From IMG/VR virus record IMGVR_UViG_3300042261_002385, positions 248,001 to 312,000 of that record: a DNA stretch of 64,000 nucleotides, one strand, 5' to 3'. The notes beneath the pieces were generated by a model, which saw only the letters and a program-made list of their open reading frames with translations, searched no databases and was not told where the DNA came from. The position numbers and the translations under genes are program-made. How positions within the stretch are numbered: position 1 is the first letter of the stretch; each line of letters begins with the position of its first letter. Below, piece by piece: positions 2,111 to 53,749 of this stretch.

Positions 2111-2199
2111 TGCAAATTTTATTTTTACAAATATATATAAAAAAAATTAATGTTAATAAGATTTAAAAAATTATATATAATTAAAAATTACACAATAAA

Positions 2200-2616: not shown

Positions 2617-2619
2617 TAT

Positions 2620-36763: not shown

Positions 36764-36766
36764 GAC

Positions 36767-37276: not shown

Positions 37277-37277
37277 A

Positions 37278-37832
37278 TTAATTTGAAATTTGTAGAGAAA
37301 TAGATCTTAAAAAATCTGAAGAGGACGAGTTTTGACCACCAAGTATGATGTAACCGGTAGTAGTCCAGTTAACTGCTGTGTAAAATACTCCTCTTCCAGT
37401 AGCTCCGTGACCCTCTATAAGACCACCATTCAATGAAGGAACCATATCATTTAGAGCATTGACAGCTGGATTAAGTGTCATAGTTCCATTACCGCCGCCT
37501 GTGATGTTACTAATTGCAAGTCTTCTTTGAAATAAGAATGTAACAGCATTAGAACTTGTCGATCTGAAAAATCCAAGACTAGTCGGTGTGTCTAAATCAT
37601 CAGTATTATTCCAGTAAAGTTGCAAACTACAAGTTCCGTTAGTTCCTGTTTTTGTAGTCATTGCTGTGACAGTAAGGATCTCAGATGCTGTAAACACATT
37701 ATCAACCCTGACACTTGACAATTTATAAAAAGCGGTCGAACTGTTTGTAGCTCCGTTGACCGAAGCAGTTGCAACTACCTTTTTAACTTTCAATCTATCT
37801 GGAAATTTTTGTCCATTTATTCTATTTGGCAT
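37278..37832 (-). CDS. Beta-rich virion accessory protein, paralogue 3 of 3
   Basis: TKTGTNG, YWNN, QRRLAI and VNWTTTGYIILGG segments. Confidence 0.55.
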   Translation of the reverse strand: MPNRINGQKFPDRLKVKKVVATASVNGATNSSTAFYKLSSVRVDNVFTASEILTVTAMTTKTGTNGTCSLQLYWNNTDDLDTPTSLGFFRSTSSNAVTFLFQRRLAISNITGGGNGTMTLNPAVNALNDMVPSLNGGLIEGHGATGRGVFYTAVNWTTTGYIILGGQNSSSSDFLRSISLQISN

Positions 37833-37847: not shown

Positions 37848-40800
37848 TTAAATTTCTATCCAAGTATTATCAGGACAGAAGTATATAGTATTACTAGATA
37901 TCGCAAAACCAACTATTCTAATTATATCAAGTGTTGCAGTAGGAGCAGATTGTGTCATCGAACCAGCGACTGTGGATAAGTAAATTGCTCCTCCAACAGT
38001 CCAAGACCAAGAAGTATTTTCTACATAACCTCTAAGTAGCATACCAGAACTAGGTGTAGCACCTAAAGCTAACGATATAAGACCAGTTGCCGAAGACGCC
38101 GCATCGGCATCCGTAGCAGCCCAAGTAGAAGTAGATGTAAAATAGTAGGTGCTAAATGTCGCAATCGAAGTAGCAGCATTACCAAATGTTACAATGTCAC
38201 CATAACCACCATTAGCACTTAATACTGTTAATGGATTGTGTGTGAACCTATATCCACCGGATACACTTACTGTTCCTGTTACACCAAGTGTATTACCATC
38301 AAATGTTAAATTCGATTCAACTGTTGCGTTAGGAGCAGTAGAATCTAAAGTTATAAGACCATTATTAGTAGTCCCGGTCAGTGATAATAATCCACTAGTT
38401 CCAGAGGTTCCATTGGCACCATTAACTACCCATGATAAAGTATATGTTCTTCCACTTGTCAGTGAGCCATTACCACTTACATATGTTACAGAAATATCAA
38501 AATAAGTTGTGTTATTTTGCATATTAGAAATTCGAAAATGACCAATAACACTATTACTTCCAACTTCAGTTATCTGTAAAGTAGTTCTGGTAACGTATGA
38601 ACTAGTAATAAGTAAATTCCACCAAGCATTATAATTAGTAGTGTTTGAGTAATCTGTTTGGTGCACTGAAACCTTAATAATAGAAGATATAGTACTGGAA
38701 TCAGTTCTAAAGTATGTAGCTCCTGGGTCAGACCAAGCGAGAGTTGAGTCATAAAACCATCTACCACTATTTGAACCGTCATTTCCAGTTCCGGAAGTTC
38801 CTGATGTTCCAGCGCCTGATGTTCCTGATGTTCCGGTGGTTCCGGAAGAACCGGAAGTTCCTGATGTTCCTGATGTTCCAGTGGTTCCGGAAGAACCGGA
38901 AGTTCCTGATGTTCCAGTGGTTCCGGAAGAACCGGAAGTTCCTGATGTTCCTGATGTTCCAGTGGTTCCGGAAGAACCGGAAGTTCCTGATGTTCCAGTG
39001 GTTCCGGAAGAACCGGAAGTTCCTGATGTTCCTGATGTTCCAGTGGTTCCGGAAGAACCGGAAGTTCCAGTTGTGCCAGAAGTTCCTCTTGTCCCAGAAG
39101 ATCCACTAGTGCCGGAAGATCCACTAGTGCCGGAAGATCCACTTGAACCAGAAGATCCACTTGAACCAGAAGATCCACTTGAACCAGAAGATCCACTTGA
39201 ACCTGAAGATCCACTTGTGCCGGATGTTCCAGCAGCTGAGTTAATTGTTAATATATTTCCATTTGAGTCAAATCCAAGAGCTCCAAGCGCGGAACCTGGG
39301 AAATTACTTACATTATTATAACTTGGTAGTTGTAATTGACCAGTGATGTGATTTATTTGTAAATCCACAGCACTTGAAGTTGTATCAGATCCTTTTAATA
39401 TTCTAAAAGAATTCTGATAATTATCAATAGAAGATGCAGTGTTATAAACACCACCTCCAGACTGAAGTGTGATTTGACCTCCCTCACCAGAACCTGATCT
39501 TGCTCCTAAAAATAAATTTGCTTCAGTAGATGTCGTAGTTGTTCCAATAGCGACTGAGATTGAATTCTGAGTCGAAGACTGAGTAACTGTCAAATATGTC
39601 GCACCAACAGCAGAGTTTACCGAACCGTCAGATAACAGGACACGAAGGTTTCCAGGATTCGAAATTGTGTTAAAACCAGTTCCAGATGTACCACTTGTAC
39701 CCGAGCTACCACTTGAACCAGAGCTACCACTTGAACCTGAAGATCCACTTGAACCAGAGCTACCACTTGTACCCGAGCTACCACTTGAACCAGAGCTACC
39801 ACTTGAACCTGAAGATCCACTTGAACCAGAGCTACCACTAGTGCCGGAAGTTCCACTTGTGCCAGAAGATCCACTTGAACCTGAAGATCCACTTGAACCA
39901 GAGCTACCACTAGTGCCGGAAGTTCCACTTGTGCCAGAAGATCCACTTGAACCTGAAGATCCACTTGAACCAGAGCTACCACTAGTCCCGGAAGTTCCAG
40001 AACTACCAGAAGTTCCAGATGAACCACTAGTGCCGGATGTTCCGGGAACTGAAGCTGTCCAGAATGCCAAACCTGTCGCATCGGACATTAATATGTAGTT
40101 TGCCTGAGCTCCGGTAGTTAACTTAATTTGAGAGGCTGTAATTCCATTAACTCTCAAATTAGAATAAGACGAAATAGTAATATCACCCTGAGTCGTTGCA
40201 GAATTATTAGTTGAAACAGCAGCAAACTCATCAGCTGATTCATCCCAAATAAATGCTTGAGTTGCTCCAGTTCCTCGATTCACCATAAATCCAGAGTCTA
40301 ATGTTGGTGACCCAGATTGAGTTGATGCTAAAAGTATCAACGGATCTTGAACAGTAAGATTTGTTGTGTTGACTGTTGTAGCCGTTCCACTTATAGTCAA
40401 ATTACCAGAGACAGTGACGTTACCAGTTACCGCTAGTGTTGTGCCATCAAAGGTTAGATTAGATTCAACAGTAGCGTTTGGAGCTGATCCATCTAAAGTT
40501 ATAACTCCATTATTTGTTGTTCCAGTTAGTGATAATAAACCGCTAGAACCGGAGGTTCCTCTTGTACCTGAGGATCCAGAGGAACCACTAGAACCGGATG
40601 TTCCAGAAGATCCACTAGAACCTGATGAACCGGAAGAACCACTTGAACCTGATGTTCCACTTGTTGCGGAAGTTCCAGATGAACCAGAAGAACCACTAGA
40701 ACCAGAAGTTCCAGAGGAACCACTAGAACCAGAAGATCCACTAGAACCGGATGTCCCAGAGGAACCACTAGAACCAGAAGATCCGCTAGAACCGGATGTC

Positions 40801-42935
40801 CCAGAGGAACCTGAGGTGCCAGAAGTACCATTTGGACCAGCCACATTAAAACTAACAAAACATAAATCGTTGTTAGTAAAATTCGCATCACTAATAACAT
40901 TATTTAGTGTAATAGTCCACCAACCAGTGTTATCAGTAGTAGCACTGAACTCATAAGTTTGAAACCAAGTCAGGTCTGTCTGTTTAGTTATCTTAATGAA
41001 TCCTCTTCTAGAAACAGAACCGTAGTTTGATAATGAATTAAAAAATCCTTGTAAATCATTACTGAAACTATCAAATCGATCAATATATAGTGACGTAGCA
41101 CTACCCATCGTCAAGTTGTTTAATCTAAATATACCAACTCCTGGATCCCCAGCAGTCGTTGTAGTGCTATAAGTATATTCGAAACTAGCGGAGTCTATAC
41201 CATTAGCACCAGAGCTTCCAGATGTGCCAGATGAACCAGATGTTCCTCTCGAACCAGAAGTGCCAGAAGAACCAGAAGTGCCAGAGGTACCGGAAGTTCC
41301 TGAAGAACCTGAGGTGCCGGATGATCCACTCGAACCAGAAGTTCCTGAAGAACCTGAGGTGCCGGAAGTTCCAGAGGTGCCGGAAGTTCCGGATGAACCA
41401 GAGGAACCACTTGATCCAGAAGAACCTGAAGATCCAGAAGAACCACTTGATCCAGAAGAACCTGAAGATCCAGAAGAACCACTTGATCCAGAGGTGCCAG
41501 AGGTGCCTGATGTTCCCGAGGAACCAGAGGTGCCGCTAGAACCCGAGGTACCTGATGATCCACTCGAACCAGAAGTGCCAGAAGAGCCTGAGGTGCCGCT
41601 AGAACCTGAAGTGCCACTAGTACCAGAAGATCCACTAGAGCCAGAGGAACCACTCGAACCGGAAGTTCCTGATGTTCCGGAAGTTCCGCTAGAACCAGAA
41701 GATCCAGAGGTCCCGGATGTTCCAGGGATAGAAGCTGTCCAAAATGCTAATCCTGTTGCATCAGACATTAGTATGTAGTTTGCTTGAGCACCAGTAGTTA
41801 TCTTTATTTGAGATGTTGTTATACCAGCAGCTCTGAAATTAGAATAAGCAGTTATAGTAACGTCGCCCTGTGTTGTCGCTGAATTGTTAGTAGTTATTAC
41901 AGAAAACTCATCAGCTGATTCATCCCAAATAAATGCTTGAGTTGCCCCGGTTCCTCGATTTATCATGAACCCAGAGTCCAATGTGGGTGCTCCTGATTGT
42001 GTAGATGCTAATAATATTATAGGGTCCTGAACTGTTAAATTAGTTGTGTTGACTGTTGTTGCCGTTCCACTTATAGTTAAATTACCAGAGACAGTGACGT
42101 TACCAGTTACCGCTAATGTCGAACCATCGAAAGTCAGATTCGACTCAACAGTAGCATTAGGAGCCGAACCATCTAAGGTTATTACACCATTATTAGTTGT
42201 TCCTGTCAAACTTAGAGATCCACTGGATCCAGATGTGCCACTAGATCCAGAAGAGCCGGAAGAACCAGATGTTCCAGAAGACCCGGAAGTTCCAGATGTA
42301 CCACTTGTGCCTGATGAACCGGATGTACCACTTGTTCCAGAAGACCCACTAGATCCAGAAGACCCGCTAGATCCTGAGGAACCACTTGTGCCTGATGAAC
42401 CACTTGTGCCTGATGAACCACTTGTGCCTGATGAACCGGATGTGCCACTTGAACCAGATGACCCAGTTGTACCACTTGTTCCAGAAGACCCGCTAGATCC
42501 TGAGGAACCACTTGTGCCTGATGAACCGGATGTACCGCTTGAACCAGATGATCCAGATGAGCCACTTGAACCTGATGATCCGGATGTACCACTAGTTCCA
42601 CTAATACCAGATACAACTGATAAAACCCAATTGGTTCCATTACTTTCTAATGTTATTGATTGATACTGTGTGAGAGTTTGTGTTAAAGATCCATCTATTG
42701 TTTGAGAAAGAACTGTATTTACCGTTATTGTGCCGGATCCGCTGTTTTTTACAACATATATTTTACCGGCTATACTAACAGCAGATGGCAACGTAACTGT
42801 AAAAGTTCCAGAGCAGTCAATAAAATAATCAGTATCGATTATAGTATATGTAGATGTCTTACTTACATATGGAAAAGTTATTCCACCTAAAGATACGAGA
42901 CCTCTTCTGGTCACAAATTCGTTTGTTCCTGCCAT
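37848..42935 (-). CDS. 1695-aa fibre protein with Gly-[Ser/Thr]-Ser tracts and repeated beta modules
   Basis: Five G-X-Y tracts, two full and one truncated LSLTGTTNNG...AFWTAS modules, and a phage fibre-like C-terminus. Confidence 0.8.
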   Translation of the reverse strand: MAGTNEFVTRRGLVSLGGITFPYVSKTSTYTIIDTDYFIDCSGTFTVTLPSAVSIAGKIYVVKNSGSGTITVNTVLSQTIDGSLTQTLTQYQSITLESNGTNWVLSVVSGISGTSGTSGSSGSSGSSGSSGSSGTSGSSGTSGSSGSSGSSGTSGTTGSSGSSGTSGSSGTSGSSGTSGSSGTSGSSGSSGSSGSSGSSGTSGTSGSSGTSGTSGTSGSSGTSGSSGSSGSSGTSGSSGSLSLTGTTNNGVITLDGSAPNATVESNLTFDGSTLAVTGNVTVSGNLTISGTATTVNTTNLTVQDPIILLASTQSGAPTLDSGFMINRGTGATQAFIWDESADEFSVITTNNSATTQGDVTITAYSNFRAAGITTSQIKITTGAQANYILMSDATGLAFWTASIPGTSGTSGSSGSSGTSGTSGTSGSSGSSGSSGSSGTSGTSGSSGTSGSSGTSGSSGSSGTSGSSGTSGSSGTSGTSGTSGSSGSSGSSGSSGSSGSSGSSGSSGSSGSSGSSGTSGTSGTSGTSGSSGTSGSSGSSGTSGSSGTSGTSGTSGSSGTSGSRGTSGSSGTSGSSGANGIDSASFEYTYSTTTTAGDPGVGIFRLNNLTMGSATSLYIDRFDSFSNDLQGFFNSLSNYGSVSRRGFIKITKQTDLTWFQTYEFSATTDNTGWWTITLNNVISDANFTNNDLCFVSFNVAGPNGTSGTSGSSGTSGSSGSSGSSGSSGTSGSSGSSGSSGSSGTSGSSGSSGSSGTSATSGTSGSSGSSGSSGSSGSSGTSGSSGSSGSSGTRGTSGSSGLLSLTGTTNNGVITLDGSAPNATVESNLTFDGTTLAVTGNVTVSGNLTISGTATTVNTTNLTVQDPLILLASTQSGSPTLDSGFMVNRGTGATQAFIWDESADEFAAVSTNNSATTQGDITISSYSNLRVNGITASQIKLTTGAQANYILMSDATGLAFWTASVPGTSGTSGSSGTSGSSGTSGTSGSSGSSGSSGSSGSSGTSGTSGTSGSSGSSGSSGSSGSSGTSGTSGTSGSSGSSGSSGSSGSSGSSGSSGTSGSSGSSGSSGSSGSSGSSGSSGTSGTSGTGFNTISNPGNLRVLLSDGSVNSAVGATYLTVTQSSTQNSISVAIGTTTTSTEANLFLGARSGSGEGGQITLQSGGGVYNTASSIDNYQNSFRILKGSDTTSSAVDLQINHITGQLQLPSYNNVSNFPGSALGALGFDSNGNILTINSAAGTSGTSGSSGSSGSSGSSGSSGSSGSSGSSGSSGTSGSSGTSGSSGTRGTSGTTGTSGSSGTTGTSGTSGTSGSSGTTGTSGTSGSSGTTGTSGTSGTSGSSGTTGTSGTSGSSGTTGTSGTSGTSGSSGTTGTSGTSGAGTSGTSGTGNDGSNSGRWFYDSTLAWSDPGATYFRTDSSTISSIIKVSVHQTDYSNTTNYNAWWNLLITSSYVTRTTLQITEVGSNSVIGHFRISNMQNNTTYFDISVTYVSGNGSLTSGRTYTLSWVVNGANGTSGTSGLLSLTGTTNNGLITLDSTAPNATVESNLTFDGNTLGVTGTVSVSGGYRFTHNPLTVLSANGGYGDIVTFGNAATSIATFSTYYFTSTSTWAATDADAASSATGLISLALGATPSSGMLLRGYVENTSWSWTVGGAIYLSTVAGSMTQSAPTATLDIIRIVGFAISSNTIYFCPDNTWIEI
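38836..39067 (-). repeat. Exact alternating 45/36-bp (81-bp period) tandem repeat inside a G-X-Y tract
   Basis: Units start at 38836, 38881, 38917, 38962, 38998 and 39043. Confidence 0.9.
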
Positions 42936-43032
42936 TTATACAATTCTTTTTTCACTTTCCAAAAGAAATCAACATTATATATTAATTTAGTAAGACCTAA
43001 AAAGACTTATATTAATTTTTTCTGATCAAATA

Positions 43033-46000
43033 TTAAATACTTCTTAGAATTGTTTTGACTATCCAACCAGATGCATCGGCTGATGCTTGTAAAACCGCAT
43101 AAGTTCCTGAAATAATAAACGAGAATGTCACACCATTAGTTGTGCCAATATCTAATGTTGAATTATCAGTGAATTTCAAGTTGCTGCCATTCCATATCGC
43201 CATCAAATTTCCAGATCTGGCATTTCCTCCACTTGATAAGGTGTAATCCACAAAGGCTCCTGTATACGAAGCTGTCGCGAAAGAATAAATTGAATTGTTA
43301 CCAGAACTAAGTGTTACTTTTTTAGTTGTGTAAAGAGAAGGAACTTGCGAGTCACCAATCAAAGTAACGTCTCCAATGGAAAACACTTGTCCTGCTGGTG
43401 TATTTATTGTAAGAGAATTACCACTTGGAGTTCCAGATATAGTCATAGAACCAGTCAAACTCAACAATTGAGTATTAGGATTAAAAGTAAAATTAGGCTG
43501 AGCAACTGCTGAATTTGTAGAAGATCCAGTAGCTGTCAATATTCTAAAGTCAAGTGGTTGTAGTATAGTATTAAATCCTGTTCCAGAGGAACCACTTGTA
43601 CCGGATGTTCCACTAGAACCAGAAGATCCACTAGAACCGGATGTTCCACTAGAACCAGAAGATCCACTCGTTCCGGAACTACCAGATGTTCCACTTGTGC
43701 CGGATGTTCCACTAGAACCAGAAGATCCACTAGAACCGGATGTTCCACTAGAACCAGAAGATCCACTCGTTCCGGAACTACCAGATGTTCCACTTGTGCC
43801 GGATGTTCCACTAGAACCAGAAGATCCACTAGTCCCGGAAGTTCCAGGAACTGAGGCTGTCCAGAATGCCAACCCTGTCGCATCGGACATCAATATGTAG
43901 TTTGCTTGAGCTCCGGTTGTTATCTTAATCTGGGATGCGGTCAGGCCATTCACTTGTAAATTTGAATAACTACTTATATTTACAACATTTGTAGTAGAAG
44001 AGTCATTTGTGCTTACAACTGCAAAAGATTTTGCTGATTCATCCCAGATAAATGCTTGAGTTGCTCCTGTTCCTCGATTTATCATAAAACCTGAATCTAA
44101 GGTAGGAGCACCAGATTGAGTTGAAGCTAACAAAATCAGTGAGTCTTCAACTGTCAAATTGGTTGTATTTACAGTTGTTGATGTTCCACTAATAGTCAAA
44201 TTACCAGAGACCGTAACATCACCAGTAACTGCTAGTGTTGAACCGTCAAATGTTAGATTAGTTTCAACCGTAGCATTTGGAGCTGATCCGTCTAAGGTTA
44301 TTACACCATTATTTGTTGTTCCAGTGAGTGATAATAAACCACTTGAACCCGAGGTTCCAGAAGAACCGGAAGTTCCGCCTGTACCAGAAGAGCCGGATGT
44401 TCCAGAAGAACCAGAAGTTCCAGAAGTTCCTGAAGAACCGGATGTTCCGGATGAACCGGATGTTCCGGATGAACCGGATGTTCCTGATGTGCCGGATGTT
44501 CCCGAAGAACCGGATGTGCCGGATGATCCTGAGGATCCACTTGAACCTGATGTTCCACGAGTTCCAGAGCTACCAGCGGTTCCAGCCGAACCACTTGTTC
44601 CGTCAACTCCACTAAATCCACTTGTTCCGGATGTTCCTGTTGTGCCAGAAGAACCGGTGGTTCCTGAAGAACCTGACGAACCACTTGAACCAGAAGTTCC
44701 GGACGAACCAGAAGTTCCTGATGTTCCCGAAGATCCACTTGAACCACTAGAACCTGAAGTTCCAGATGAACCAGAAGTTCCTGATGTTCCCGAAGATCCA
44801 CTTGAGCCAGATGACCCTGAAGTCCCAGATGAACCCGAAGTTCCACTTGAGCCAGATGAGCCTGAAGTTCCTGAGGATCCACTAGTCCCGGTAGAACCAG
44901 AAGTGCCTGAGGATCCACTTGAACCTGATGTTCCTGATGTTCCACTAGAACCAGAGGATCCACTTGTTCCAGAGGTGCCACTTGTTCCAGAGCTGCCCGC
45001 TGATCCACTTGTTCCAGTAGAACCAGAGGTGCCACTTGAACCAGAAGTTCCAGAACTACCAGAAGTTCCAGAAGATCCACTAGTGCCGGATGTTCCGGGA
45101 ACTGAAGCTGTCCAGAATGCCAAACCTGTCGCATCGGACATTAATATGTAGTTTGCCTGAGCCCCGGTTGTTATCTTAATCTGGGATGCAGTCAGACCAT
45201 TCACTTGTAAATTTGAATAACCAGAAATAGTAATTGGACTAGATGTTGAATTGTCATTTGTAGAAACAGCGGCAAAGGACTGAGCTGATTCATCCCAGAT
45301 GAAGGCTTGTGTCAAACCAGTTCCCCTTCTAACCATGAAACCAGAGTCTAACGTTGGTGAACCAGATTGAGTTGACGCCAACAAAATTATTGGATCCTCT
45401 ACAGTCAAGTTGACAGTATCTATTGTTGTAGTTGTCCCACTTATAGTTAAATCTCCAGTTGCAACAATATTACCAGTAACAGTTAGTGTCGAACCATCAA
45501 ATGTTAGATTAGATTCAACCGTAGCATTTGGAGCTGAACCATCTAAGGTTATTACACCATTATTTGTTGTTCCCGTAAGTGATAATAGACCACTTGAACC
45601 CGAGGTCCCTCTTGTTCCAGAAGTACCTGAGGATCCACTAGTGCCGGTAGATCCAGAAGTACCTGACGATCCACTAGAGCCGGACGAACCACTAGAGCCG
45701 GATGTTCCAGAAGTGCCTGAGGTGCCACTAGAACCGGATGTGCCTGAGGTGCCACTAGAACCGGATGTGCCTGAGGTGCCACTAGAACCGGATGTGCCTG
45801 AGGTGCCACTAGAACCAGACGTTCCAGATGAGCCACTAGAACCAGAAGTTCCAGAACTACCAGAACTACCAGAAGTTCCTGATGATCCACTGGAACCAGA
45901 GGATCCACTTGAACCACTAGATCCAGAAGTTCCAGTAGAACCACTAGAACCAGAAGTTCCGCTTGAACCAGAAGATCCACTAGATCCAGAAGTACCGGAG

Positions 46001-49000
46001 GTTCCGTTTGTCCCTGAAGTTCCGGACGTTCCTGAAGAACCAGAGCTACCAGAAGTTCCTGAGGTGCCACTTGTACCCGTAGATCCAGATGTTCCACTAC
46101 TACCTGCGGATCCGGATGTTCCAAAAGTTCCAGATGTTCCATCAACTCCACTAAGACCACTAGTTCCTGATGATCCACTCGTTCCAGTAGATCCACTCGT
46201 TCCAGCAGATCCACTTGTTCCTGAAGTTCCTGATGTTCCACGAGTCCCGGATGAACCGGAAGTTCCACTAGAACCAGATGTGCCGCTTGTTCCAGAAGTC
46301 CCGGCTGAACCGGAAGTTCCACTAGAACCAGATGATCCACTCGTTCCAGAGGTTCCAGGAACAGAAGATGTCCAAAATCCTAATCCGGTCGAGTCAGACA
46401 TTAATATGTAGTTTGCTTGAGCTCCAGTAGTAATTTTTATTTGAGATGTAGTCAATCCACCAACTTGTAAATTTGAATAATTTAAAATACTAAGGGTTGT
46501 ATTTGTTGAACTATCATTCGTAGAAATAGCGACAAAAGATTTTGCTGATTCATCCCAGATAAATGCTTGAGTCGCTCCTGTTCCGCGATTTATCATAAAT
46601 CCAGAGTCTAGTGTTGGTGTTCCAGATTGAGTTGATGCTAAAAGTATCAACGGATCTTGAACTGTCAAATTAGTAGTATTAACTGTTGTAGAGGTTCCTG
46701 ATATAATTAAATTACCAGAGACAGTAACGTCTCCTGTCACAGCTAGTGTATTACCATCAAATGTTAGATTAGATTCGACAGTTGCATTAGGAGCCGAACC
46801 ATCTAAAGTTATTACACCGTTGTTAGTTGTTCCGGTAAGTGATAGTAAACCACTTGAACCAGATGTGCCGCTAGATCCCGATGTTCCTGTTGTTCCAGAT
46901 GAACCAGAAGATCCGGACGAACCGGAAGATCCACTTGAACCAGATGAACCAGAAGATCCACTAGTTCCAGAAGATCCACTAGTTCCAGCCGAACCTGATG
47001 TCCCATCAACACCACTAAAACCACTTGAGCCCGAAGTGCCTGAACTTCCCGAGGTTCCAGTAGAACCGGAGGTTCCTCTTGTTCCTGATGTTCCACTAGA
47101 TCCTGATGTGCCACTAGATCCAGATGTGCCACTAGATCCAGAAAAGCCAGATGTTCCAGAAGTGCCAGCTGTTCCAGAAGTGCCTGTAGTTCCAGATGAT
47201 CCTGAAGATCCACTTGAACCAGAAGATCCACTGGTTCCCGAGCTACCGGTTGAACCTGACGTTCCAGATGATCCACTAGTTGCGGAAGTTCCACTGGTGC
47301 CTGAAGATCCAGATGACCCGCTAGTTCCGGATGATCCACTTGAACCTGATGTGCCAGAACTTCCCGAGGTTCCAGAAGATCCAGATGTTCCGCTAGTTCC
47401 AGAAGAACCAGATGTTCCACTAGATCCAGAAGAACCAGATGTTCCGCTAGTTCCAGATGAGCCGGATGTTCCACTTGAACCGGATGATCCAGAAGTTCCT
47501 GATGATCCGCTAGATCCGGACGTTCCACTAGAACCAGATGCTCCACTGGTTCCCGAGGTTCCACTAGAACCAGACGACCCACTAGAACCAGAGCTACCTG
47601 ATGAGCCAGATGTTCCAGTTGTTCCACTAGAACCGGATGTTCCACTAGTACCTGATGAACCAGATGTTCCACTGGTTCCAGGAGTTGAAGATGTCCAGAA
47701 TGCTAATCCTGTTGAATCAGACATAAGTATGTATCCAGACTGAGCACCGGTTGTCAGTTTAAGTTGGGAAGCGGTGAGACCATTTAGTCTCAAATTAGAG
47801 TAAGAAGAAATATTCACATTTCCATTTACTGTGTGGTCATCATTTGTTGAAATTAGAGCGAATGTGTCATCAGATTCATCCCAAATAAAGGCTTGTGTCA
47901 CTCCAGTGCCACGAACAAACATGAAACCTTCATCTAGGCTTGGTGATCCACTTTGACTGTGCCCCAATGCTATTATCGGATCACTTACTACTAAACTACT
48001 TGTGTTTACAACTGAGGCCGAACCTAATACTGAGAAAGAACCAGTAACTACTAAATTTCCACTAATATTTAAAGTTGAACCATCAAATGTCAAATTAGAC
48101 TCAGCATTAGCAGCATTGACTGTCCCATCGGAAGTAAGTATTCTATTATCACCAGGGTTAGAAACTGTATTGAATCCAGTTCCACTAGAACCAGATGTCC
48201 CACTTGAACCTGATGATCCACTAGATCCAGAAGTTCCAGATGATCCTATCGGCGCTGGCATAACTTGCCAGTAAGCACCGGATGCTGACCATCCTAAGTA
48301 AGACATATCACTAATACTAGAAGTAGCATAATTTAATACATCATGTAATTCACTTAACTCATATCCTGTTTCTGGTCTTATAAAAATTGAACCCACTGAC
48401 GCATGAACTCTTACTACCCAACCGACTAAATTAGAGTGTAAAGGAGCATCTAATGGATTTTGAGTATAAGTTCCCGGAGTCGTGGATAAGTAGATTGGTA
48501 AACCGGCGGTTAGTCCAATTGTATTTAAGTTATTTACTATTCCGAAGTCTGTAACAAAACCTTCATTACCAGCTGGTATTGTTTCAGTTACCATTCCTAA
48601 AACATTTTGAGTCGATTCATTAGAAGCCGATGCTAGTTTCACTGATGGTCTATTACCTTGTGCTCCACTTATATAAACTAAATCACCATCATTCAGAGTT
48701 GTTCCGGAATCGTTATAAACTAAAACAACATTTTCAGAACCTATCTGTAAATTAACATTTCCTCCTTTAAGCACGACAGATGGAACACCATTACCATCAT
48801 CCCATCTTATTTCACCAGCAACTTGAGCAGGAACCCCACTATAAGTAAATCCAGTATCGAATTTTATAGACCCGGTTATACCTAATTGACTATATTGGTT
48901 AAATGTAAGATTTGTTTGTGCAACTGCCGAATTAGTAGAAGAACCTGTTGCGGTCAATATTCTATAGTCGGCTGGTTGTAATATTGTATTAAAACCAGTT

Positions 49001-52000
49001 CCACTTGAGCCTGAGGTTCCACTAGTTCCACTAGAACCTGAAGAGCCTGAAGTTCCACTTGTGCCAGAAGAGCCTGAAGTTCCACTTGTGCCAGAAGATC
49101 CACTTGTGCCACTAGTTCCAGAAGATCCACTTGTGCCACTTGAACCGGACGAACCAGATGTTCCACTCGATCCAGATGATCCACTGCTTCCCGATGTTCC
49201 TGAAGTTCCACTTGAACCGGATGAACCAGAAGTTCCAGAGGAACCAGAGCTACCGGAAGTTCCACTAGAACCAGAAGAACCGGAAGTTCCACTAGAACCA
49301 GAAGTTCCAGAGGAACCAGAGCTACCGGAAGTTCCACTTGTTCCAAAAGAGCCTGAGGTTCCAGATGATCCACTAGAACCAGAAGTGCCGGACGAACCAC
49401 TTGATCCACTAGAACCAGATGATCCGGAGGAACCACTTGAACCAGATGTTCCACTAGAACCAGATGTTCCAGATGAACCTGAGGTTCCAGAATTCCCAGA
49501 AGATCCAGATGTTCCACTCTCACCAGAAGTTCCAGATACTCCCGAAATACCAGAAGATCCAGATGTTCCAAAAGAACCTGAGGTTCCTGACGATCCACTA
49601 GAACCAGAAGTGCCGGACGAACCGCTTGTTCCACTAGAACCAGATGATCCAGAGGAACCACTAGTTCCGCTAGAACCAGATGATCCACTAGAACCAGAAG
49701 TTCCACTTGTGCCTGGAATTGAAGAGGTCCAACTTGCTAAACCATTCGAATCAGATACCAGTATATAACCATTCTGAGCACCATCTGTTATTTTTATTTG
49801 AGATGTAGTCAAACCACCAACTTGTAGATTTGAATAGCCATTTATACTCACAATACCAGAAACATCCGAATCGTTCGTGCTAACGGCAGCGAATGACTTT
49901 GCAGATTCATCCCATATGAACGCCTGTGTCAAACCGGTTCCTCTTTTGACCATAAAACCTGAATCAAGAGTTGGAGAACCAGACTGAGTTGATGCTAGTA
50001 ATATAATAGAATCCTCAACTGTTAGGTTTACTGTGTTTACAGTAGTTGAAGTTCCACTTATCGTTAGATTACCAGACACAGTTAAATCCCCAGTGACTGA
50101 TAGTGTATTTCCATCAAATGTCAAATTTGATTCTACTGTAGCATTCGGAGCAGAACCATTCAAAGTTATCACTCCATTATCTGTTGTGCCACTAAGTGAC
50201 AACAAACCACTAGAACCAGAAGTTCCAGATGAACCACTTGAGCCAGATGAACCACTTGTTCCAGTAGAGCCGGACGAACCACTTGTTCCAGAAGATCCAG
50301 AAGATCCACTAGTCCCAGAGCTACCTGATGATCCACTTGTTCCAGAAGATCCAGAGGATCCGGATGTTCCACTTGAGCCAGAAGAACCACTTGAGCCAGA
50401 AGAACCACTTGTTCCAGCAGTTCCGGAAGTTCCACTAGAACCACTAGATCCAGAAGAACCACTAGATCCAGAGGATCCAGAGGATCCGGATGTTCCACTA
50501 GATCCAGATGATCCTGACGTTCCTGAACTTCCACTAGTTCCTGAACTACCGGATGTTCCACTAGTTCCGGAACTACCAGATGAACCACTAGTTCCGGATG
50601 TTCCACTAGTTCCGGAACTACCAGATGAACCACTAGATCCAGATGATCCAGATGATCCACTAGATCCAGATGATCCAGATGATCCACTAGATCCATCAAC
50701 TCCATCAATACCTGATAGACCTGAGGTTCCGCTTGAACCAGAGGTGCCTGAGCTACCAGAAGTACCACTAGATCCAGATGTGCCTCTAGTGCCCGATGAA
50801 CCGGATGTTCCGGAACTACCGGATGAACCACTTGTGCCTGATGAGCCGGATGTTCCACTTGTTCCGGAACTACCAGATGAACCGGATGTTCCACTAGAAC
50901 CAGAAGAACCACTTGTTCCGGAAGTTCCAGGAACTGAGGCTGTCCAGAATGCTAAACCTGTCGCATCGGACATTAATATGTAGTTTGCCTGAGCACCAGT
51001 CGTTATCTTAATTTGTGAGGTAGTCAAACCACCTACTTGTAAATTAGAGTAAGAGGATATATTAATAGAGTTAGCAGTAGCTGGATCATTCGTAGATACA
51101 GCAGCAAAGGACTGAGCTGATTCATCCCAAATAAAAGCCTGTGTGGATCCAGTGCCTCTTCTAACCATGAAACCCGAATCCAGTGTAGGAGAACCAGACT
51201 GTGTTGAAGCTAATAAAATTATTGGATCTTCAACCGTAAGGTTAATCGTATCAATAGTTGTAGTTGTTCCACTAATAGTCAAATTACCAGATACTGTAAC
51301 ATCACCAGTAACCGCTAGTGTTGATCCATCAAAGGTTAGATTAGATTCAACAGTAGCATTTGGAGCAGTCCCATCTAAGGTTATTACACCGTTGTTAGTT
51401 GTTCCAGTGAGTGATAATAAACCACTTGAACCCGAGGTTCCGGATGAACCACTTGTGCCTGAGCTACCACTAGAACCGCTTGTTCCAGAAGATCCACTTG
51501 AACCAGAAGAACCGGATGTGCCACTAGATCCAGATGTGCCAGATGTCCCGCTAGAACCCGAAGTTCCACTAGAACCGGATGTTCCACTTGTTCCAGATGT
51601 TCCTGAAGTTCCTTCAGTTCCTGAAGTGCCACTAGAACCGGAAGATCCACTAGAACCGGATGTTCCACTAGAACCGGAAGATCCACTAAGACCGGATGTT
51701 CCACTAGATCCAGAGGTTCCTTCAGTTCCTGACGTGCCACTAGATCCGGATGTTCCTGAAGATCCACTTGTTCCTGATGTGCCAGTCGAACCAGATGTTC
51801 CTGAAGATCCACTTGTTCCCGCGGTTCCACTTGTACCTGATGAACCTGAAGATCCAGAAGTTCCAGAAGTTCCGCTCTCTCCAGAAGTTCCAGACACACC
51901 AGATATACCGGACGTGCCTGATGAACCTGAAGATCCACTTGTTCCAGACGAACCTGAAGTTCCAGATGTGCTTGGAATTGAGGCCGTCCAACTTGCGTTA

Positions 52001-52200
52001 CCAACAAGGTCAGAAACTAAATAGTATCCATACTGTTGATTTCCGTCAATATATTGAAAAGTTCCGTTAACTACTAACTTTTGATTTGCATTATCCCAAC
52101 GTAAATTATTAAAATTCTCACTAACAACACTATTGGTGCCAAGAAAAAGAATCGAACCTTGCGAGGCACCTCGTATTTGTTTAATATTCATTTGAGCCAT
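43033..52200 (-). CDS. 3055-aa giant fibre protein with eight Gly-[Ser/Thr]-Ser tracts and six ~160-aa beta modules
   Basis: The GNLTISGT.TTV.T.NLTV.D.II.L..G..RG....WDES module is typical of T4-like phage fibres, with Gly at every third residue between modules. Confidence 0.85.
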   Translation of the reverse strand: MAQMNIKQIRGASQGSILFLGTNSVVSENFNNLRWDNANQKLVVNGTFQYIDGNQQYGYYLVSDLVGNASWTASIPSTSGTSGSSGTSGSSGSSGTSGISGVSGTSGESGTSGTSGSSGSSGTSGTAGTSGSSGTSGSTGTSGTSGSSGTSGSSGTSGTEGTSGSSGTSGLSGSSGSSGTSGSSGSSGSSGTSGTEGTSGTSGTSGTSGSSGTSGSSGTSGTSGSSGTSGSSGSSGSSGTSGSSGSSGTSGSSGTSGSSGLLSLTGTTNNGVITLDGTAPNATVESNLTFDGSTLAVTGDVTVSGNLTISGTTTTIDTINLTVEDPIILLASTQSGSPTLDSGFMVRRGTGSTQAFIWDESAQSFAAVSTNDPATANSINISSYSNLQVGGLTTSQIKITTGAQANYILMSDATGLAFWTASVPGTSGTSGSSGSSGTSGSSGSSGTSGTSGSSGTSGSSGSSGTSGSSGTRGTSGSSGTSGSSGTSGSSGTSGLSGIDGVDGSSGSSGSSGSSGSSGSSGSSGSSGSSGTSGTSGTSGSSGSSGTSGTSGSSGTSGSSGTSGSSGSSGTSGSSGSSGSSGSSGSSGSSGTSGTAGTSGSSGSSGSSGSSGTSGSSGSSGTSGSSGSSGTSGSSGSSGTSGSSGSTGTSGSSGSSGSSGTSGSSGLLSLSGTTDNGVITLNGSAPNATVESNLTFDGNTLSVTGDLTVSGNLTISGTSTTVNTVNLTVEDSIILLASTQSGSPTLDSGFMVKRGTGLTQAFIWDESAKSFAAVSTNDSDVSGIVSINGYSNLQVGGLTTSQIKITDGAQNGYILVSDSNGLASWTSSIPGTSGTSGSSGSSGSSGTSGSSGSSGSSGTSGSSGTSGSSGSSGTSGSFGTSGSSGISGVSGTSGESGTSGSSGNSGTSGSSGTSGSSGTSGSSGSSGSSGSSGSSGSSGTSGSSGSSGTSGSFGTSGTSGSSGSSGTSGSSGTSGSSGSSGTSGSSGSSGTSGSSGSSGTSGTSGSSGSSGSSGTSGSSGSSGTSGSSGTSGTSGSSGTSGTSGSSGTSGTSGSSGSSGTSGTSGSSGTGFNTILQPADYRILTATGSSTNSAVAQTNLTFNQYSQLGITGSIKFDTGFTYSGVPAQVAGEIRWDDGNGVPSVVLKGGNVNLQIGSENVVLVYNDSGTTLNDGDLVYISGAQGNRPSVKLASASNESTQNVLGMVTETIPAGNEGFVTDFGIVNNLNTIGLTAGLPIYLSTTPGTYTQNPLDAPLHSNLVGWVVRVHASVGSIFIRPETGYELSELHDVLNYATSSISDMSYLGWSASGAYWQVMPAPIGSSGTSGSSGSSGSSGTSGSSGTGFNTVSNPGDNRILTSDGTVNAANAESNLTFDGSTLNISGNLVVTGSFSVLGSASVVNTSSLVVSDPIIALGHSQSGSPSLDEGFMFVRGTGVTQAFIWDESDDTFALISTNDDHTVNGNVNISSYSNLRLNGLTASQLKLTTGAQSGYILMSDSTGLAFWTSSTPGTSGTSGSSGTSGTSGSSGTTGTSGSSGSSGSSGSSGSSGTSGTSGASGSSGTSGSSGSSGTSGSSGSSGTSGSSGTSGTSGSSGSSGTSGSSGTSGTSGSSGTSGSSGTSGSSGSSGTSGSSGSSGTSGTSATSGSSGTSGSTGSSGTSGSSGSSGSSGSSGTTGTSGTAGTSGTSGFSGSSGTSGSSGTSGSSGTSGTRGTSGSTGTSGSSGTSGSSGFSGVDGTSGSAGTSGSSGTSGSSGSSGSSGSSGSSGSSGSSGTTGTSGSSGTSGSSGLLSLTGTTNNGVITLDGSAPNATVESNLTFDGNTLAVTGDVTVSGNLIISGTSTTVNTTNLTVQDPLILLASTQSGTPTLDSGFMINRGTGATQAFIWDESAKSFVAISTNDSSTNTTLSILNYSNLQVGGLTTSQIKITTGAQANYILMSDSTGLGFWTSSVPGTSGTSGSSGSSGTSGSAGTSGTSGTSGSSGTSGSSGTRGTSGTSGTSGSAGTSGSTGTSGSSGTSGLSGVDGTSGTFGTSGSAGSSGTSGSTGTSGTSGTSGSSGSSGTSGTSGTNGTSGTSGSSGSSGSSGTSGSSGSTGTSGSSGSSGSSGSSGSSGTSGSSGSSGTSGSSGSSGTSGSSGTSGTSGSSGTSGTSGSSGTSGTSGSSGTSGTSGTSGSSGSSGSSGSSGTSGSTGTSGSSGTSGTRGTSGSSGLLSLTGTTNNGVITLDGSAPNATVESNLTFDGSTLTVTGNIVATGDLTISGTTTTIDTVNLTVEDPIILLASTQSGSPTLDSGFMVRRGTGLTQAFIWDESAQSFAAVSTNDNSTSSPITISGYSNLQVNGLTASQIKITTGAQANYILMSDATGLAFWTASVPGTSGTSGSSGTSGSSGTSGSSGTSGSTGTSGSAGSSGTSGTSGTSGSSGSSGTSGTSGSSGSSGTSGSTGTSGSSGTSGSSGSSGTSGSSGTSGSSGSSGSSGTSGTSGSSGTSGSSGSSGSSGTSGTSGSSGTSGSSGSSGSSGTTGSSGTTGTSGTSGFSGVDGTSGSAGTAGSSGTRGTSGSSGSSGSSGTSGSSGTSGTSGTSGSSGTSGSSGTSGSSGTSGTSGSSGTSGSSGTGGTSGSSGTSGSSGLLSLTGTTNNGVITLDGSAPNATVETNLTFDGSTLAVTGDVTVSGNLTISGTSTTVNTTNLTVEDSLILLASTQSGAPTLDSGFMINRGTGATQAFIWDESAKSFAVVSTNDSSTTNVVNISSYSNLQVNGLTASQIKITTGAQANYILMSDATGLAFWTASVPGTSGTSGSSGSSGTSGTSGTSGSSGTSGSSGSSGTSGSSGSSGSSGTSGTSGTSGSSGTSGSSGSSGTSGSSGSSGSSGTSGTSGSSGTGFNTILQPLDFRILTATGSSTNSAVAQPNFTFNPNTQLLSLTGSMTISGTPSGNSLTINTPAGQVFSIGDVTLIGDSQVPSLYTTKKVTLSSGNNSIYSFATASYTGAFVDYTLSSGGNARSGNLMAIWNGSNLKFTDNSTLDIGTTNGVTFSFIISGTYAVLQASADASGWIVKTILRSI
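43611..43810 (-). repeat. Exact 99-bp tandem duplication
   Basis: The sequence at 43611 recurs at 43710. Confidence 0.88.
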
Positions 52201-52308
52201 TAATGACTATATCTTTTTTACTTACTATATATAAAAAAAAGATTGTCTAAAATAATGGAGACTAGTCAAAACAAAATTATTTTGAACAAAAAAATTAGTC
52301 AATAAATT

Positions 52309-53733
52309 TTAATTTTCATAGACTATGATAACCTCATCATTGTTATCCAACTCGAATTTAGCTGTAAAACCATTCCAATATAGAGTATTGCCAGATGAAA
52401 CACTCCCTAAAACAAGAGCCGAAAGACCACCGTCGTTTGAGAAATAACAGTCTACATTTGAAAATGTGCCATCTCCTAACTTCTGTAACTGACCATTGAT
52501 AAAGACTTGAATTCTTGAATATTGATTGGGAGTTGATGTTATGGCTAAACCAGTTGTAGAATTATTACCCACAGTCACAGATGAGGTTCCATATTGGGAA
52601 ACTGGTGTTCCATTTATACCTAAAATATCTACACTAATTTGATTTCCATTGTGAGTTAAACCAGTTCCAACTATTGAATTGAAATCTAAAGAAACAGTAG
52701 GTCCAGATTTAGTGAGACCTAAACCAGCATTCAGAAGAATGTCTACCTCTGAACCAGAAAGACCTGCTGTCCACGTATCTGTTGATTCATTCCATATAAG
52801 TGCCGCTGTTGGTTGATTACCCCTAATCACTTCAATACCAGCATTCAAAAATGGAGAACCAGAAAACGTTGCATTTAAAGTTATGATATTATCCTCAATT
52901 AGTAGAGTTTCAGTTTGGATATACGATACGGTTCCGTTTACAATCAAACTACCATTTACTGTTAAAGAGTCTTGAAAAATTCGGTCTCCATCTATTGTAT
53001 CTTTTAATCTTAATAAATCATTTGAAATCTCTAATGAGTCAGAATTGACATTTACATCCAAACTATAACCGTTCGCGGTAAGACCGTTTCCAGGAATAAT
53101 GGTATTATCTATGATAATTTCATCTCCAGAGAAAGTAAGTCCACTATTCACACCTAAATTAACATCTAAAGTAATATAGTTTGCGGTTCCTCCTCCGGAT
53201 AAGCCATTTCCAGCTGTCACACCAGCTATAGTTCCACTTGAAGTAGAAACCCCTTTTGAACCAAGATATTTGTAAAATGAAATTTTAGGAGGTAAAACAC
53301 TTGTGACTCCAGATGGTAAAGTTCCATAAAATGTCAATAATCCAGCAGCAGTATCAACTAACCAATCACCATCACCAAAAGCAATTGATGTAGTTCCATC
53401 ATTCTTATATAAAGAGTAATTGTAAGTTCCATCACCGAAATTAAATGATATAGCATCAATTAAATTGGCACTGAAATAAGCTCGATTGTTAGAACCAGCC
53501 AAGTGAGTAAGGGTTTGTTTCTCAAAATATTGAACAACGCCAGACGAAGCACCCGAAACTAATGACGGTGCCGTAGTCGGTATTAAAGAACTTTCAGACC
53601 AAATTTGGTCACTAAAAATAATTTCTCTTCCAAGTTTCGGCTCTTCGAAGAAATCCCTAGATGTCAAAGTTTCTCCAGCTCCAAATGACTTTTTGAATAA
53701 TCTACTTGCTTGTTGTGACGCTGTTAATGCCAT
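52309..53733 (-). CDS. Tail/fibre-associated structural protein
   Basis: VTAGNGLSGGG and GLGLT repeats, plus one diverged copy of the fibre module (GSLIVNGT..IEDNIITLN..RG..WNES). Confidence 0.7.
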   Translation of the reverse strand: MALTASQQASRLFKKSFGAGETLTSRDFFEEPKLGREIIFSDQIWSESSLIPTTAPSLVSGASSGVVQYFEKQTLTHLAGSNNRAYFSANLIDAISFNFGDGTYNYSLYKNDGTTSIAFGDGDWLVDTAAGLLTFYGTLPSGVTSVLPPKISFYKYLGSKGVSTSSGTIAGVTAGNGLSGGGTANYITLDVNLGVNSGLTFSGDEIIIDNTIIPGNGLTANGYSLDVNVNSDSLEISNDLLRLKDTIDGDRIFQDSLTVNGSLIVNGTVSYIQTETLLIEDNIITLNATFSGSPFLNAGIEVIRGNQPTAALIWNESTDTWTAGLSGSEVDILLNAGLGLTKSGPTVSLDFNSIVGTGLTHNGNQISVDILGINGTPVSQYGTSSVTVGNNSTTGLAITSTPNQYSRIQVFINGQLQKLGDGTFSNVDCYFSNDGGLSALVLGSVSSGNTLYWNGFTAKFELDNNDEVIIVYEN

Positions 53734-53749
53734 TTATTTCTTCTTTTTT

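Follow-up and report, generated by a model that had tools for sequence, protein, structure and literature searches.

What kind of structure is built from long runs of glycine-serine/threonine-serine triplets that are nearly free of proline, and what could hold it together, is the question raised by a fibre-gene cluster in a 64,000-nucleotide (nt) stretch of viral DNA, hereafter the window, which corresponds to bases 248001-312000 of an IMG/VR virus record of 436,265 bp with 31% G+C. Two genes of the cluster encode proteins of 3055 and 1695 amino acids (aa), P0001 and P0002, in which tracts of Gly-X-Y triplets alternate with globular domains. A sequence-only reading of this DNA had described the tracts as collagen-like and connected them with the transferase genes nearby; the observation is confirmed here, and its interpretation is partly supported and sharpened. 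Phage collagen-like fibres and a Ser/Thr-rich Gly-X-Y composition are already known, and the new element is the recurrent pairing of a phage collagen-like fibre with a protein O-glycosyltransferase of the TibC/Aah type. That P0001 and P0002 form segmented, trimeric, O-glycosylated collagen-like fibres of the virion is the reading favoured here, and we give it an even chance of being right.

Triplet tracts in two fibre proteins

P0001 consists of an N-terminal anchor-like domain, eight G-[S/T]-S tracts, six copies of a 163-aa module, one different 249-aa domain and a 180-aa C-terminal domain. P0002 combines an N-terminal beta-sandwich-like domain, five such tracts, two modules, two other inter-tract domains and a 319-aa C-terminal domain. 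The coding sequences and tracts lie as follows (window coordinates):

43033..52200 (-), coding sequence of fibre protein P0001, 3055 aa
51415..51963 (-), P0001 tract 1, aa 80-262, 61 triplets
50200..50928 (-), P0001 tract 2, aa 425-667, 81 triplets
48994..49713 (-), P0001 tract 3, aa 830-1069, 80 triplets
48175..48246 (-), P0001 short tract, aa 1319-1342, 8 triplets
46843..47679 (-), P0001 tract 4, aa 1508-1786, 93 triplets, with one in-register Gly-to-Ala change (ATS)
45583..46356 (-), P0001 tract 5, aa 1949-2206, 86 triplets
44332..45096 (-), P0001 tract 6, aa 2369-2623, 85 triplets
43576..43845 (-), P0001 tract 7, aa 2786-2875, 30 triplets, with a recent 99-nt x 2.6 duplication inside
37848..42935 (-), coding sequence of fibre protein P0002, 1695 aa
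38808..42608 (-), span of the five P0002 tracts: 42213-42608, 41193-41723, 40533-40838 (one ATS), 39675-40043 and 38808-39230 (81-nt x 3.3 duplication)

Measured by regular expression, the P0001 tracts are 183, 243, 240, 24, 279, 258, 255 and 90 aa long, the 279-aa tract being made up of 132 residues, one ATS triplet and 144 residues; those of P0002 measure 132, 177, 102, 123 and 141 aa (44, 59, 34, 41 and 47 triplets), the 102-aa tract consisting of 57 residues, ATS and 42 residues. The five central tracts of P0001, earlier estimated at about 240-275 residues, thus span 240-279. The estimated total of some 1,500 Gly-X-Y residues holds for P0001 alone (1569 aa), to which P0002 adds 672, and the description of the tracts as proline-free is exact for P0001 and off by a single Pro for P0002.

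The triplet pattern is very regular. Position 1 is Gly in all but one of 524 triplets in P0001 and all but one of 224 in P0002, both exceptions being Ala in register, and the register is unbroken from the end of one module or domain to the start of the next in all 13 tracts (8-93 triplets). The tracts are thus uninterrupted (Gly-X-Y)n in the collagen sense, with two Gly-to-Ala changes in about 750 triplets and no register shift, and the Pfam Collagen model PF01391 matches with E 2.9e-195. In P0001, position X is occupied by Ser (260) or Thr (239) and rarely by other residues (24), position Y is Ser in 473 triplets (90%), and charged residues are rare; Gly makes up 33.5% of tract residues and is almost never found at X or Y.

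At the DNA level, the tracts are old and scrambled. Their Gly codons comprise 275 GGA, 166 GGT, 67 GGC and 15 GGG, the third codon position being close to saturated, and all six Ser codons are in use. Tandem-repeat units detected by TRF match by only 60-80%, and paralogous tracts are no more alike than shuffles of their 9-nt blocks (z mostly <2.5), unlike the modules between them, which are 62-81% identical. This high codon diversity places the constraint at the protein level and excludes a fresh microsatellite. The claim that a triplet register is under constraint is borne out in this sense. The register itself must be taken with caution as evidence, since the TRF periods are, with one exception, multiples of 9 nt and slippage alone would keep it through insertions and deletions; the evidence for selection is the near absence of Gly substitutions, which shows Gly to be under strong purifying constraint.

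AGT is over-represented at Y (148, compared with 14 at X), which suggests GGT TCT AGT GGA ACT TCT as an ancestral 18-nt unit. Young tandem duplications inside the old tracts, at 38821-39086 (81 nt x 3.3, 96% matches), 43592-43846 (99 nt x 2.6, 97%) and 45713-45843 (27 nt x 4.9, 94%), point to ongoing length change in multiples of 9 nt by slippage or unequal exchange. Recent duplication as the source of a constant tract length was considered and rejected, as the tracts are not colinear at the DNA level.

The window agrees without a single difference with unitigs of two separate studies, e.g., over 46633-49069; they confirm the sequence piecewise and break inside tracts, so that none spans a whole tract length. 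In two lagoon or freshwater runs, unitig depth over 46300-52250 reaches 10^4-10^5 in the tract-coding parts and stays near 0-30 in the modules, a contrast attributable to many other genomes whose similar repeats cross-map; DNA coding for G-[S/T]-S repeats is therefore very abundant in those waters. More than 25 open reading frames (ORFs) of 100-330 aa overlap the tracts between 38570 and 52070 on both strands in other frames (e.g., 44159-45151 (+), 45410-46411 (+) and 50033-50983 (+)). They owe their existence solely to the absence of stop codons from the repeat in those frames, and could be reported as genes by gene callers.

Inter-tract domains and relatives of the fibres

The 163-aa module occurs eight times in the two proteins:

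50929-51414 (-), module in P0001, aa 263-424
49714-50199 (-), module in P0001
47680-48174 (-), module in P0001
46357-46842 (-), module in P0001
45097-45582 (-), module in P0001
43846-44331 (-), module in P0001
41724-42212 (-), module in P0002
40044-40532 (-), module in P0002

The copies are mutually 58-89% identical and share the conserved core NLTFDG...DPIILLA..QSG.P.LDSGF..RG.G.TQAFIWDES..F. A profile of the module matches 10,319 representative proteins at E<=1e-3 among 1.84 billion and marks it therefore as a common building block of uncultured phage fibres; by tblastn, a copy is detectable in only two phage genome records. Prediction of a complex of three copies of P0001 residues 620-880 gave an interface score (ipSAE) of 0.90, compared with 0.09 for the best of three controls, and the confident interface comprises residues 665-824, i.e., the module. 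In the calibration of the 0.90 mark, for which two copies were used rather than three as here, 21 of 30 proteins solved as one-chain pairs and none of 23 single chains reached it. The model thus supports, at the level of prediction, that the module binds its own copies and trimerises.

An AlphaFold2 (AF2) monomer model of the module (pLDDT 83.7) found no match better than E 0.6 among PDB structures with Foldseek, the low-ranked ones being phage fibre stalks with TM <0.3. The module has no Pfam match and no match in a profile search against PDB sequences. Failure to match a solved fold is a common outcome for extended, intertwined fibre segments. Atlas features place the module near Mtd_N-bearing phage protein clusters, which is a lead only.

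A search of PDB sequences gave no relatives for the middle and C-terminal domains of P0001, and the inter-tract domains at 48247-48993 (P0001 aa 1070-1318) and 40839-41192 (P0002 aa 582-699) have no Pfam or PDB match. The latter, of 118 aa, is found again between tracts at 16 further viral loci, in some cases within ORFs devoid of the 163-aa module, and may be a second kind of trimer node. The C-terminus of P0002 weakly matches the PDB entry 8keg, 'neck fiber gp82N' (E 0.0024). Its N-terminal domain (aa 1-109, window 42609-42935) matches Pfam Phage_depo_C (E 0.007) and phrog_37034 (E 8e-10) and resembles the small beta-sandwiches usual at the C-terminal tips of fibres and depolymerases, P0019 ending in such a domain; the orientation of the P0002 fibre may be unusual.

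The N- and C-terminal domains of P0001 are common to shorter orthologues, two of which (P0005, L017) have about 765 aa with one module and 13-14 triplets and a third (L020) 1218 aa with 87 triplets. A 1080-aa protein of the uncultured phage genome LR756502 joins the N-terminal domain of P0001 to the module with 0 triplets, and the orthologues of LR756502 and LR745206 are multi-repeat fibre proteins. Since the orthologues carry far less tract, P0001 is a four-fold expanded version, which arose by duplication of a tract-plus-module unit and by tract growth. That its five central tracts (80-93 triplets) are similar in length despite their scrambled sequence hints weakly at stabilising selection within P0001 (n=5). 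The near-constant tract length asserted earlier is accordingly a property of P0001 only; a conserved constant length was rejected in view of orthologue totals of 0, 13-14 or 87 triplets, and the P0002 tracts vary from 34 to 59. The contigs of the homologues P0005 and P0041 are too short for gene context.

Beyond the orthologues, G-[S/T]-S tracts are present in 76 of the 79 IMG/VR loci found through the module, including a complete 274-kb phage (G006), and many of these loci have 900-1150 tract residues per ORF. Related loci reach 1,740 tract residues in a single ORF, single uninterrupted tracts of 560 and 389 triplets are found on related viral contigs (L163 3-6056 and L121 1-4092), and at G009:C1:~169400-183700 a collagen-like ORF of 4,772 aa matches the Collagen model about 100 times. 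P0001 is therefore not the largest of its kind. Nor is the compositional type new, because S/T-rich Gly-X-Y ORFs were noted in the phage P-SSM2 in 2005 (PMC1079782). LR756502 (642 kb) encodes two other Pro-poor collagen-like proteins of a GATGSQGIQ type with Thr or Gln at Y (L094 124000-131000 and L095 556000-564000), one of them joined to a large beta-helix-like region.

A TibC/Aah-type transferase and its link to the tracts

Downstream of the fibre genes lies a cluster of three transferase genes:

30553..32865 (-), 770-aa bifunctional glycosyltransferase (P0155), with a GT-A domain at aa 1-400 and a BAHT domain at aa 403-755 (window 30601-31659)
32846..34420 (-), 524-aa protein with a C-terminal FkbM-family methyltransferase domain (PF05050 E 5.7e-9; TIGR01444 E 1.8e-15)
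34404..36053 (-), 549-aa two-domain glycosyltransferase, Glycos_transf_1 (GT-B) at aa 163-313 (E 2.5e-12) and Glyco_transf_25 at aa 393-457 (E 7.8e-7), both above cut-off

Residues 403-755 of the 770-aa protein match NCBIfam TIGR04414, the autotransporter strand-loop-strand O-heptosyltransferase family of Aah and TibC (BAHT), with E 4e-81 and 272.9 bits, the curated cut-off being 200, and align by phmmer to residues 28-385 of TibC (PDB 4RB4/4RAP) with E 1e-54. The catalytic Asp D110 and the four iron-finger cysteines C339, C342, C358 and C370, whose roles were established in TibC (PMC4358343), are all conserved; 4RB4 itself carries the D110A mutation, and Asp stands at this position in the phage protein. 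By these sequence signatures the protein is a homologue of the TibC/Aah-type protein Ser O-heptosyltransferases, and its gene neighbourhood suggests what its acceptor and donor might be. Residues 1-400 form a beta-rich subdomain followed by a GT-A fold, belong to a conserved family with 51 homologues and contain an invariant DxD motif, D176-x-D178, in 'FLDADIQV'. Their AF2 model (pLDDT 85.2) shows a GT-A fold carrying this motif, of the kind seen in retaining glycosyltransferases (GT8/GT24/GT6-like), and finds the UGGT catalytic domain, glycogenin, BoGT6a and alpha-3-GalT with Foldseek (E 6e-8 to 7e-7, TM(target) 0.5-0.59); at the sequence level the glycogenin matches are weak (E 0.07). Taken by domain families, the locus would comprise one transferase to start a sugar on protein Ser, three domains that might extend it and one enzyme to cap it with methyl.

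The genome holds a second, stand-alone BAHT of 398 aa (307.1 bits with TIGR04414) at 160171-161367 (L179 7171-8367), beside a Nudix-like ORF and about 18 kb from a second pair of G-[S/T]-S ORFs, of about 910 and 544 aa, at 138105-142482 (L180 10103-14480); this pair has more Glu, Arg and Asn at X and Y. No autotransporter was seen in the window or at the second collagen locus, the rest of the genome not having been searched.

Whether the enzyme is tied to the tracts was assessed from both sides. From the enzyme side, the best 80 of at least 163 BAHT relatives in IMG/VR (46-85% identity) were taken, and a Gly-X-Y ORF of at least 8 triplets was found within 10 kb in 38 of them, starting at most 100 nt downstream of the BAHT on the same strand in 15. 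Most of these ORFs show a high share of Ser/Thr at X and of Ser at Y; thresholds of X = S/T >= 70% and Y = S >= 60% are passed by 20 of the 38 nearest ones. By comparison, none of 74 same-size loci around a nuclease gene of related phages carries a Gly-X-Y ORF (Fisher p 6e-14, which is overstated since the loci are related and not independent). Because the BAHT-adjacent ORFs are mostly without the 163-aa module, the shared element is the tract. Among five large enzyme-bearing contigs without a nearby tract, four have big collagen-like ORFs elsewhere. Both features occur together in G002, G003, G005, the complete 274-kb G006 and LR756501, and the present genome combines two BAHTs with four G-[S/T]-S ORFs. 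LR745206 has neither BAHT nor G-[S/T]-S tracts; LR756502 has only the GATGSQGIQ-type collagen, and a BAHT was not found in it.

From the fibre side the picture is different: a homologue of the window enzyme lies within 10 kb in only 3 of the 79 module and tract loci, so that the link is one of genome-level co-occurrence with frequent, non-obligatory adjacency. A transferase beside the fibre as a general rule for these loci was rejected on this count and on the distances in G005, G006 and G007, where glycosyltransferase genes lie at least 40 kb from the fibres. With this restriction, the earlier link between tracts and neighbouring transferases has gained much in strength, as a BAHT homologue lies next door and its family recurs beside G-[S/T]-S ORFs in unrelated phage contigs.

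The same triad is found in the cultured Microcystis phage Mel-JY01 (PP395634.1, L176), which has a collagen-like ORF, a fibre 'structural protein' and a 1226-aa fusion of FkbM and BAHT domains. The collagen-like ORF is an open G-[T/S]-S frame of at least 1016 aa at 1-3052 (+) that runs off the start of the record; in its place GenBank lists antisense PVPE-rich 'hypothetical proteins' (-) at 1-651 and 739-2298, an annotation that is probably on the wrong strand and illustrates how easily such repeats are mis-called. Its 'cytidylyltransferase-like' gene has no homologue in the present genome and is unlike HldE. As a cultured phage, Mel-JY01 makes the ideas put forward below directly testable. 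The literature search found no paper that links huge phages, BAHTs and collagen-like proteins or mentions Mel-JY01, which, the search being incomplete, is weak evidence.

The source of P0001 and P0002 is a huge freshwater phage, and both proteins lie within its fibre-gene cluster. Runs of at least 15 metagenome studies, of freshwater, lake, estuarine and other origin, contain the window stretch; its nearest named relatives by DNA are 'uncultured phage' genomes of 630-735 kb (LR745206, LR756501-4). Major-capsid, protease and portal genes are also inside the window, which translation table 11 reads cleanly, with no need for another genetic code. The record has a CheckV completeness of 95% and the IMG/VR class 'provirus', a doubtful label for a huge lytic-type phage. 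A protein identical to the 770-aa transferase (window 30553-32865) is recorded on a 522,324-bp contig, so that the genome may be larger than the 436-kb record, which would then be a short or incomplete version of it. The immediate neighbours of the two fibre genes are:

52309..57181 (-), upstream fibre-type genes P0153 (474 aa) and P0154 (1143 aa)
36104..37832 (-), three small ORFs of 219, 169 and 184 aa between fibre genes and transferases

P0153 holds a divergent copy of the module core, P0154 has a DUF2793 domain and a weak tail-fibre PHROG match, and further upstream ORFs at 57186 and 58274 are also fibre-like. Family searches gave no match for the three small ORFs, two of which keep their synteny in L019/L020.

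Proposed three-stranded rods, their rivals and known systems

In the reading favoured here, P0001 and P0002 would be virion fibre proteins, most likely tail or neck fibres, their attachment being hinted at by the tail-fibre-type neighbours and the weak 'neck fiber' match of the P0002 C-terminus. Each fibre would be a homotrimer with the appearance of beads on a string, in which the modules and other globular domains trimerise and clamp the three strands into register on either side of every tract. The tracts would form extended three-stranded collagen rods of the polyproline-II (PPII) type, with Gly, rarely Ala, pointing toward the common axis. At about 0.29 nm per residue (PMC8968730), the rods would be some 70-81 nm each in P0001 and 30-50 nm in P0002, giving about 455 nm and 195 nm of rod per fibre if triple-helical; the earlier arithmetic (about 0.45 um, knobs 70-81 nm apart) is reproduced under the same proviso. 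Since triplets of Ser and Thr only have low helix propensity, such rods would need other stabilisation, for which terminal trimer clamps, hydroxyl-water networks and probably dense Ser O-glycosylation are candidates. The adjacent TibC/Aah-type domain would start the sugar on Ser, and the fused GT-A domain, the GT-B/GT25 protein and the FkbM methyltransferase would extend and cap it. Tract length would shift fast by slippage in 9-nt multiples and so tune the reach of the fibre. Long fibres of changeable length might enlarge the distance over which hosts are captured in dilute lake water or extend through thick envelopes or mucilage, and the glycans might protect the Ser-rich rods from proteases.

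Four points favour a three-stranded rod: only Gly or Ala is found at every third position; predicted trimers clamp both tract ends; a single helix face is small, which permits packing round one common axis and not in a multi-helix bundle; and phage side-tail proteins offer a precedent with their collagen stalks (PMC3368898). A wider proposal, for which our confidence is lower and which may well prove wrong, is that TibC-type hyper-O-glycosylation turns Pro-free (Gly-Ser/Thr-Ser)n into sugar-stabilised triple helices, which would add a third way of stabilising collagen to hydroxyproline and to networks of charge or hydration. Such a phage-borne system would be widespread among freshwater phages, provide rapidly retuned glycosylated fibres of 0.2-0.5 um and represent a BAHT substrate class unlike the autotransporters.

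Several observations weigh against the favoured reading. Of the usual collagen stabilisers, i.e., Pro or hydroxyproline, charged pairs, or Thr or Gln at Y as in bacterial collagens, the P0001 tracts offer little, with no Pro, few charged residues and 90% Ser at Y, and in the host-guest collagen peptides of Persikov and colleagues (2000) Ser at X or Y and Thr at X are reportedly of low propensity. Close relatives carry Ala at Gly positions in considerable numbers, 16-20% in L015 (2-9875), whose module is 81% identical to that of the window, and 10% in L020 (12270-15596). The replacement of GTS by ATS is always in register there and only Ala replaces Gly, yet at 10-20% it argues against a canonical tightly packed collagen helix, at least in those relatives; work on the 1CAG peptide is said to make Gly-to-Ala the mildest collagen substitution, and a canonical helix at such density would be badly strained. 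Among the PDB matches to a tract there is no solved structure with G-S/T-S tracts; the search returned animal collagens and a placeholder GAPGSQ chain (8zxl), matched by Gly periodicity only, and was set aside as uninformative. The three-copy prediction left the Gly-X-Y flanks without confident placement and is silent for or against a triple helix. On the enzyme side, gmhA of the ADP-heptose pathway was not found in the phage genome, and the low adjacency seen from the fibre side and the distance of more than 40 kb to the enzyme gene in G005 and G006 count in the same direction. Known BAHTs act on the strand-loop-strand motif of beta-helical autotransporters (PMC4358343) and not on PPII or collagen, and the actual targets could lie in the beta-rich modules.

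The strongest competing reading is a chain stiffened by glycans in the manner of a mucin, to which we assign a substantial although clearly smaller share of probability. Each chain would be an extended, densely O-glycosylated PPII 'bottle-brush', three of which run side by side between trimeric nodes with no triple helix, and the small third residue would serve the glycosyltransferase, through acceptor spacing or access, or permit loose lateral packing. The low helix propensity of S/T-only triplets, the frequent Ala of close relatives, the Ser plus Thr content of the tracts, the hyperglycosylating enzyme family linked to them and their being left unplaced by the complex predictor all fit such a chain, as do single tracts of 389 and 560 triplets in related loci and a length that is very plastic in evolution, as in linkers. 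A linker or mucin needs no Gly, however, so that it would not explain why position 1 admits only Gly or Ala over hundreds of triplets whose third codon position is near saturation. Typical mucin domains are, moreover, Pro-rich, unlike these tracts with their single Pro in P0002, and the trimer nodes predicted at both tract ends favour association of three strands.

Less probable, indeed unlikely, are collagen-like rods without glycosylation of the tracts, stabilised only by terminal clamps, hydration and low habitat temperature, the transferases modifying the modules, another virion protein or host surface glycans. This would agree with the action of BAHTs on beta-helix strand-loop-strand motifs (the NCBIfam name; PMC4358343), with the rarity of the enzyme within 10 kb of module and tract loci, with the occurrence of Pro-poor collagen-like proteins but no BAHT in LR756502, and with the missing gmhA. 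It is difficult to reconcile with the 15 module-free loci in which enzyme and G-[S/T]-S ORF adjoin directly on one strand, as compared with 0 of 74 control loci, and with the co-occurrence of the two at the genome level where adjacency fails.

A polyglycine-II bundle, in which the tract folds back into antiparallel PPII helices as in the snow-flea antifreeze protein or the tip of gp38, had been offered as the alternative and appears very improbable. Known bundles of this type contain about 45% Gly on two faces and consist of short PPII segments joined by regular turns. The three-residue periodicity with a small residue at one position and the tolerance of Ala in relatives would suit them, but Gly here is one third of residues and leaves only one helix face for close packing, runs of 80-93 triplets (up to 560 elsewhere) have no periodic turn or loop motifs, Cys or Pro, and length steps of a single triplet do not fit fixed-length hairpins. 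That the repeats are an assembly artefact or a neutral runaway in a decaying gene, as the breaking of short-read unitigs inside tracts and the recent local tandem duplications might suggest, can practically be dismissed given intact frames over 3055 and 1695 aa, identical unitigs in two studies, presence of the stretch in at least 15 metagenome studies, domains kept in orthologues, the strong purifying constraint on Gly and the same architecture in 76 of 79 related loci.

Should the tracts prove triple-helical, they would be the most extreme imino-acid-free collagens so far and a natural test of whether O-glycans alone can hold the helix together, which bears on collagen design. If the proposed pairing is true, the TibC/Aah heptosyltransferases, known from E. 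coli virulence autotransporters, would enter phage virion assembly with a new type of acceptor. These proteins being common in freshwater metagenomes, host finding by such phages may depend on very long, fast-evolving fibres.

Compared with known systems, the closest in architecture are phage collagen-like fibres such as the EPclA side-tail proteins of E. coli O157 prophages, which are trimers with a collagen stalk and a dumbbell or beaded shape (PMC3368898). As in these, Gly-X-Y tracts with a Pfam Collagen match stand here between globular trimerising domains. In contrast, EPclA tracts are short and rich in charged residues with 48% Pro at X (PMC3368898), whereas P0001 has no Pro, almost no charge, central tracts of 80-93 triplets and 1569 residues in eight tracts of one chain. 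'Bacteriophage collagen' had been described by Smith et al. in 1998, as cited in PMC1079782. Gly-X-Y makes up 49% of orf028 of the cyanomyovirus P-SSM2, where Pro, Ser or Thr often occupy X and Y (PMC1079782), and the Microcystis phage MaMV-DH01 has a 'tail collagen protein' (PMC9927357). Likened by description, they are S/T-rich collagen-like candidates for structural or fibre proteins in aquatic phages; they were noted only as sequence features, and a protein O-glycosyltransferase link was not found in the searched papers. With the polyglycine-II bundles of the snow-flea antifreeze protein and gp38 of T-even-type phages the tracts share a three-residue periodicity with small residues, not the Gly content and turn architecture of those folds.

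For sugar-assisted stability, other systems are nearer. Riftia cuticle collagen is said to have galactose on Thr at Y with Pro at X, and glycosylated (Gly-Pro-Thr)n peptides were reportedly studied by Bann and Bachinger in 2000. The analogy drawn earlier with this collagen survives as a concept, that of O-glycosylation of hydroxy-amino acids rescuing a hydroxyproline-poor triple helix, and fails in its details, as the residues here are mostly Ser without Pro, Ser is the likely acceptor and the enzyme family is unrelated. In Mimivirus, collagen glycosylation is hydroxylysine-linked. Its fibril proteins resemble the present case in combining viral collagen-like proteins with viral glycosyltransferases for surface fibrils (PMC9614988), and differ in belonging to a eukaryotic virus with different sequences and chemistry. 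The best functional analogue is BclA of the Bacillus anthracis/cereus exosporium, a glycosylated bacterial collagen with an O-glycosylated GPT-type region (PMC8968730), which is likewise a hydroxyproline-free microbial collagen-like filament and carries O-glycans on hydroxy-amino acids placed by dedicated transferases. It differs in having Pro at X, Thr at Y and far shorter tracts, compared with Ser/Thr at X, Ser at Y and other enzymes here. For the enzyme itself, the models are TibC with TibA and Aah with AIDA-I, in which many heptoses are placed on Ser of one repetitive protein encoded beside the enzyme (PMC4358343; PDB 4RAP/4RB4). The phage protein is a family member by sequence, and its gene likewise stands beside that of a highly repetitive, Ser-rich presumed substrate. 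The known substrates, in contrast, are beta-helical passengers of autotransporters from pathogenic E. coli, its own candidate substrate is a collagen-like fibre of a phage, and its domain is joined to a GT-A partner, or to FkbM in Mel-JY01.

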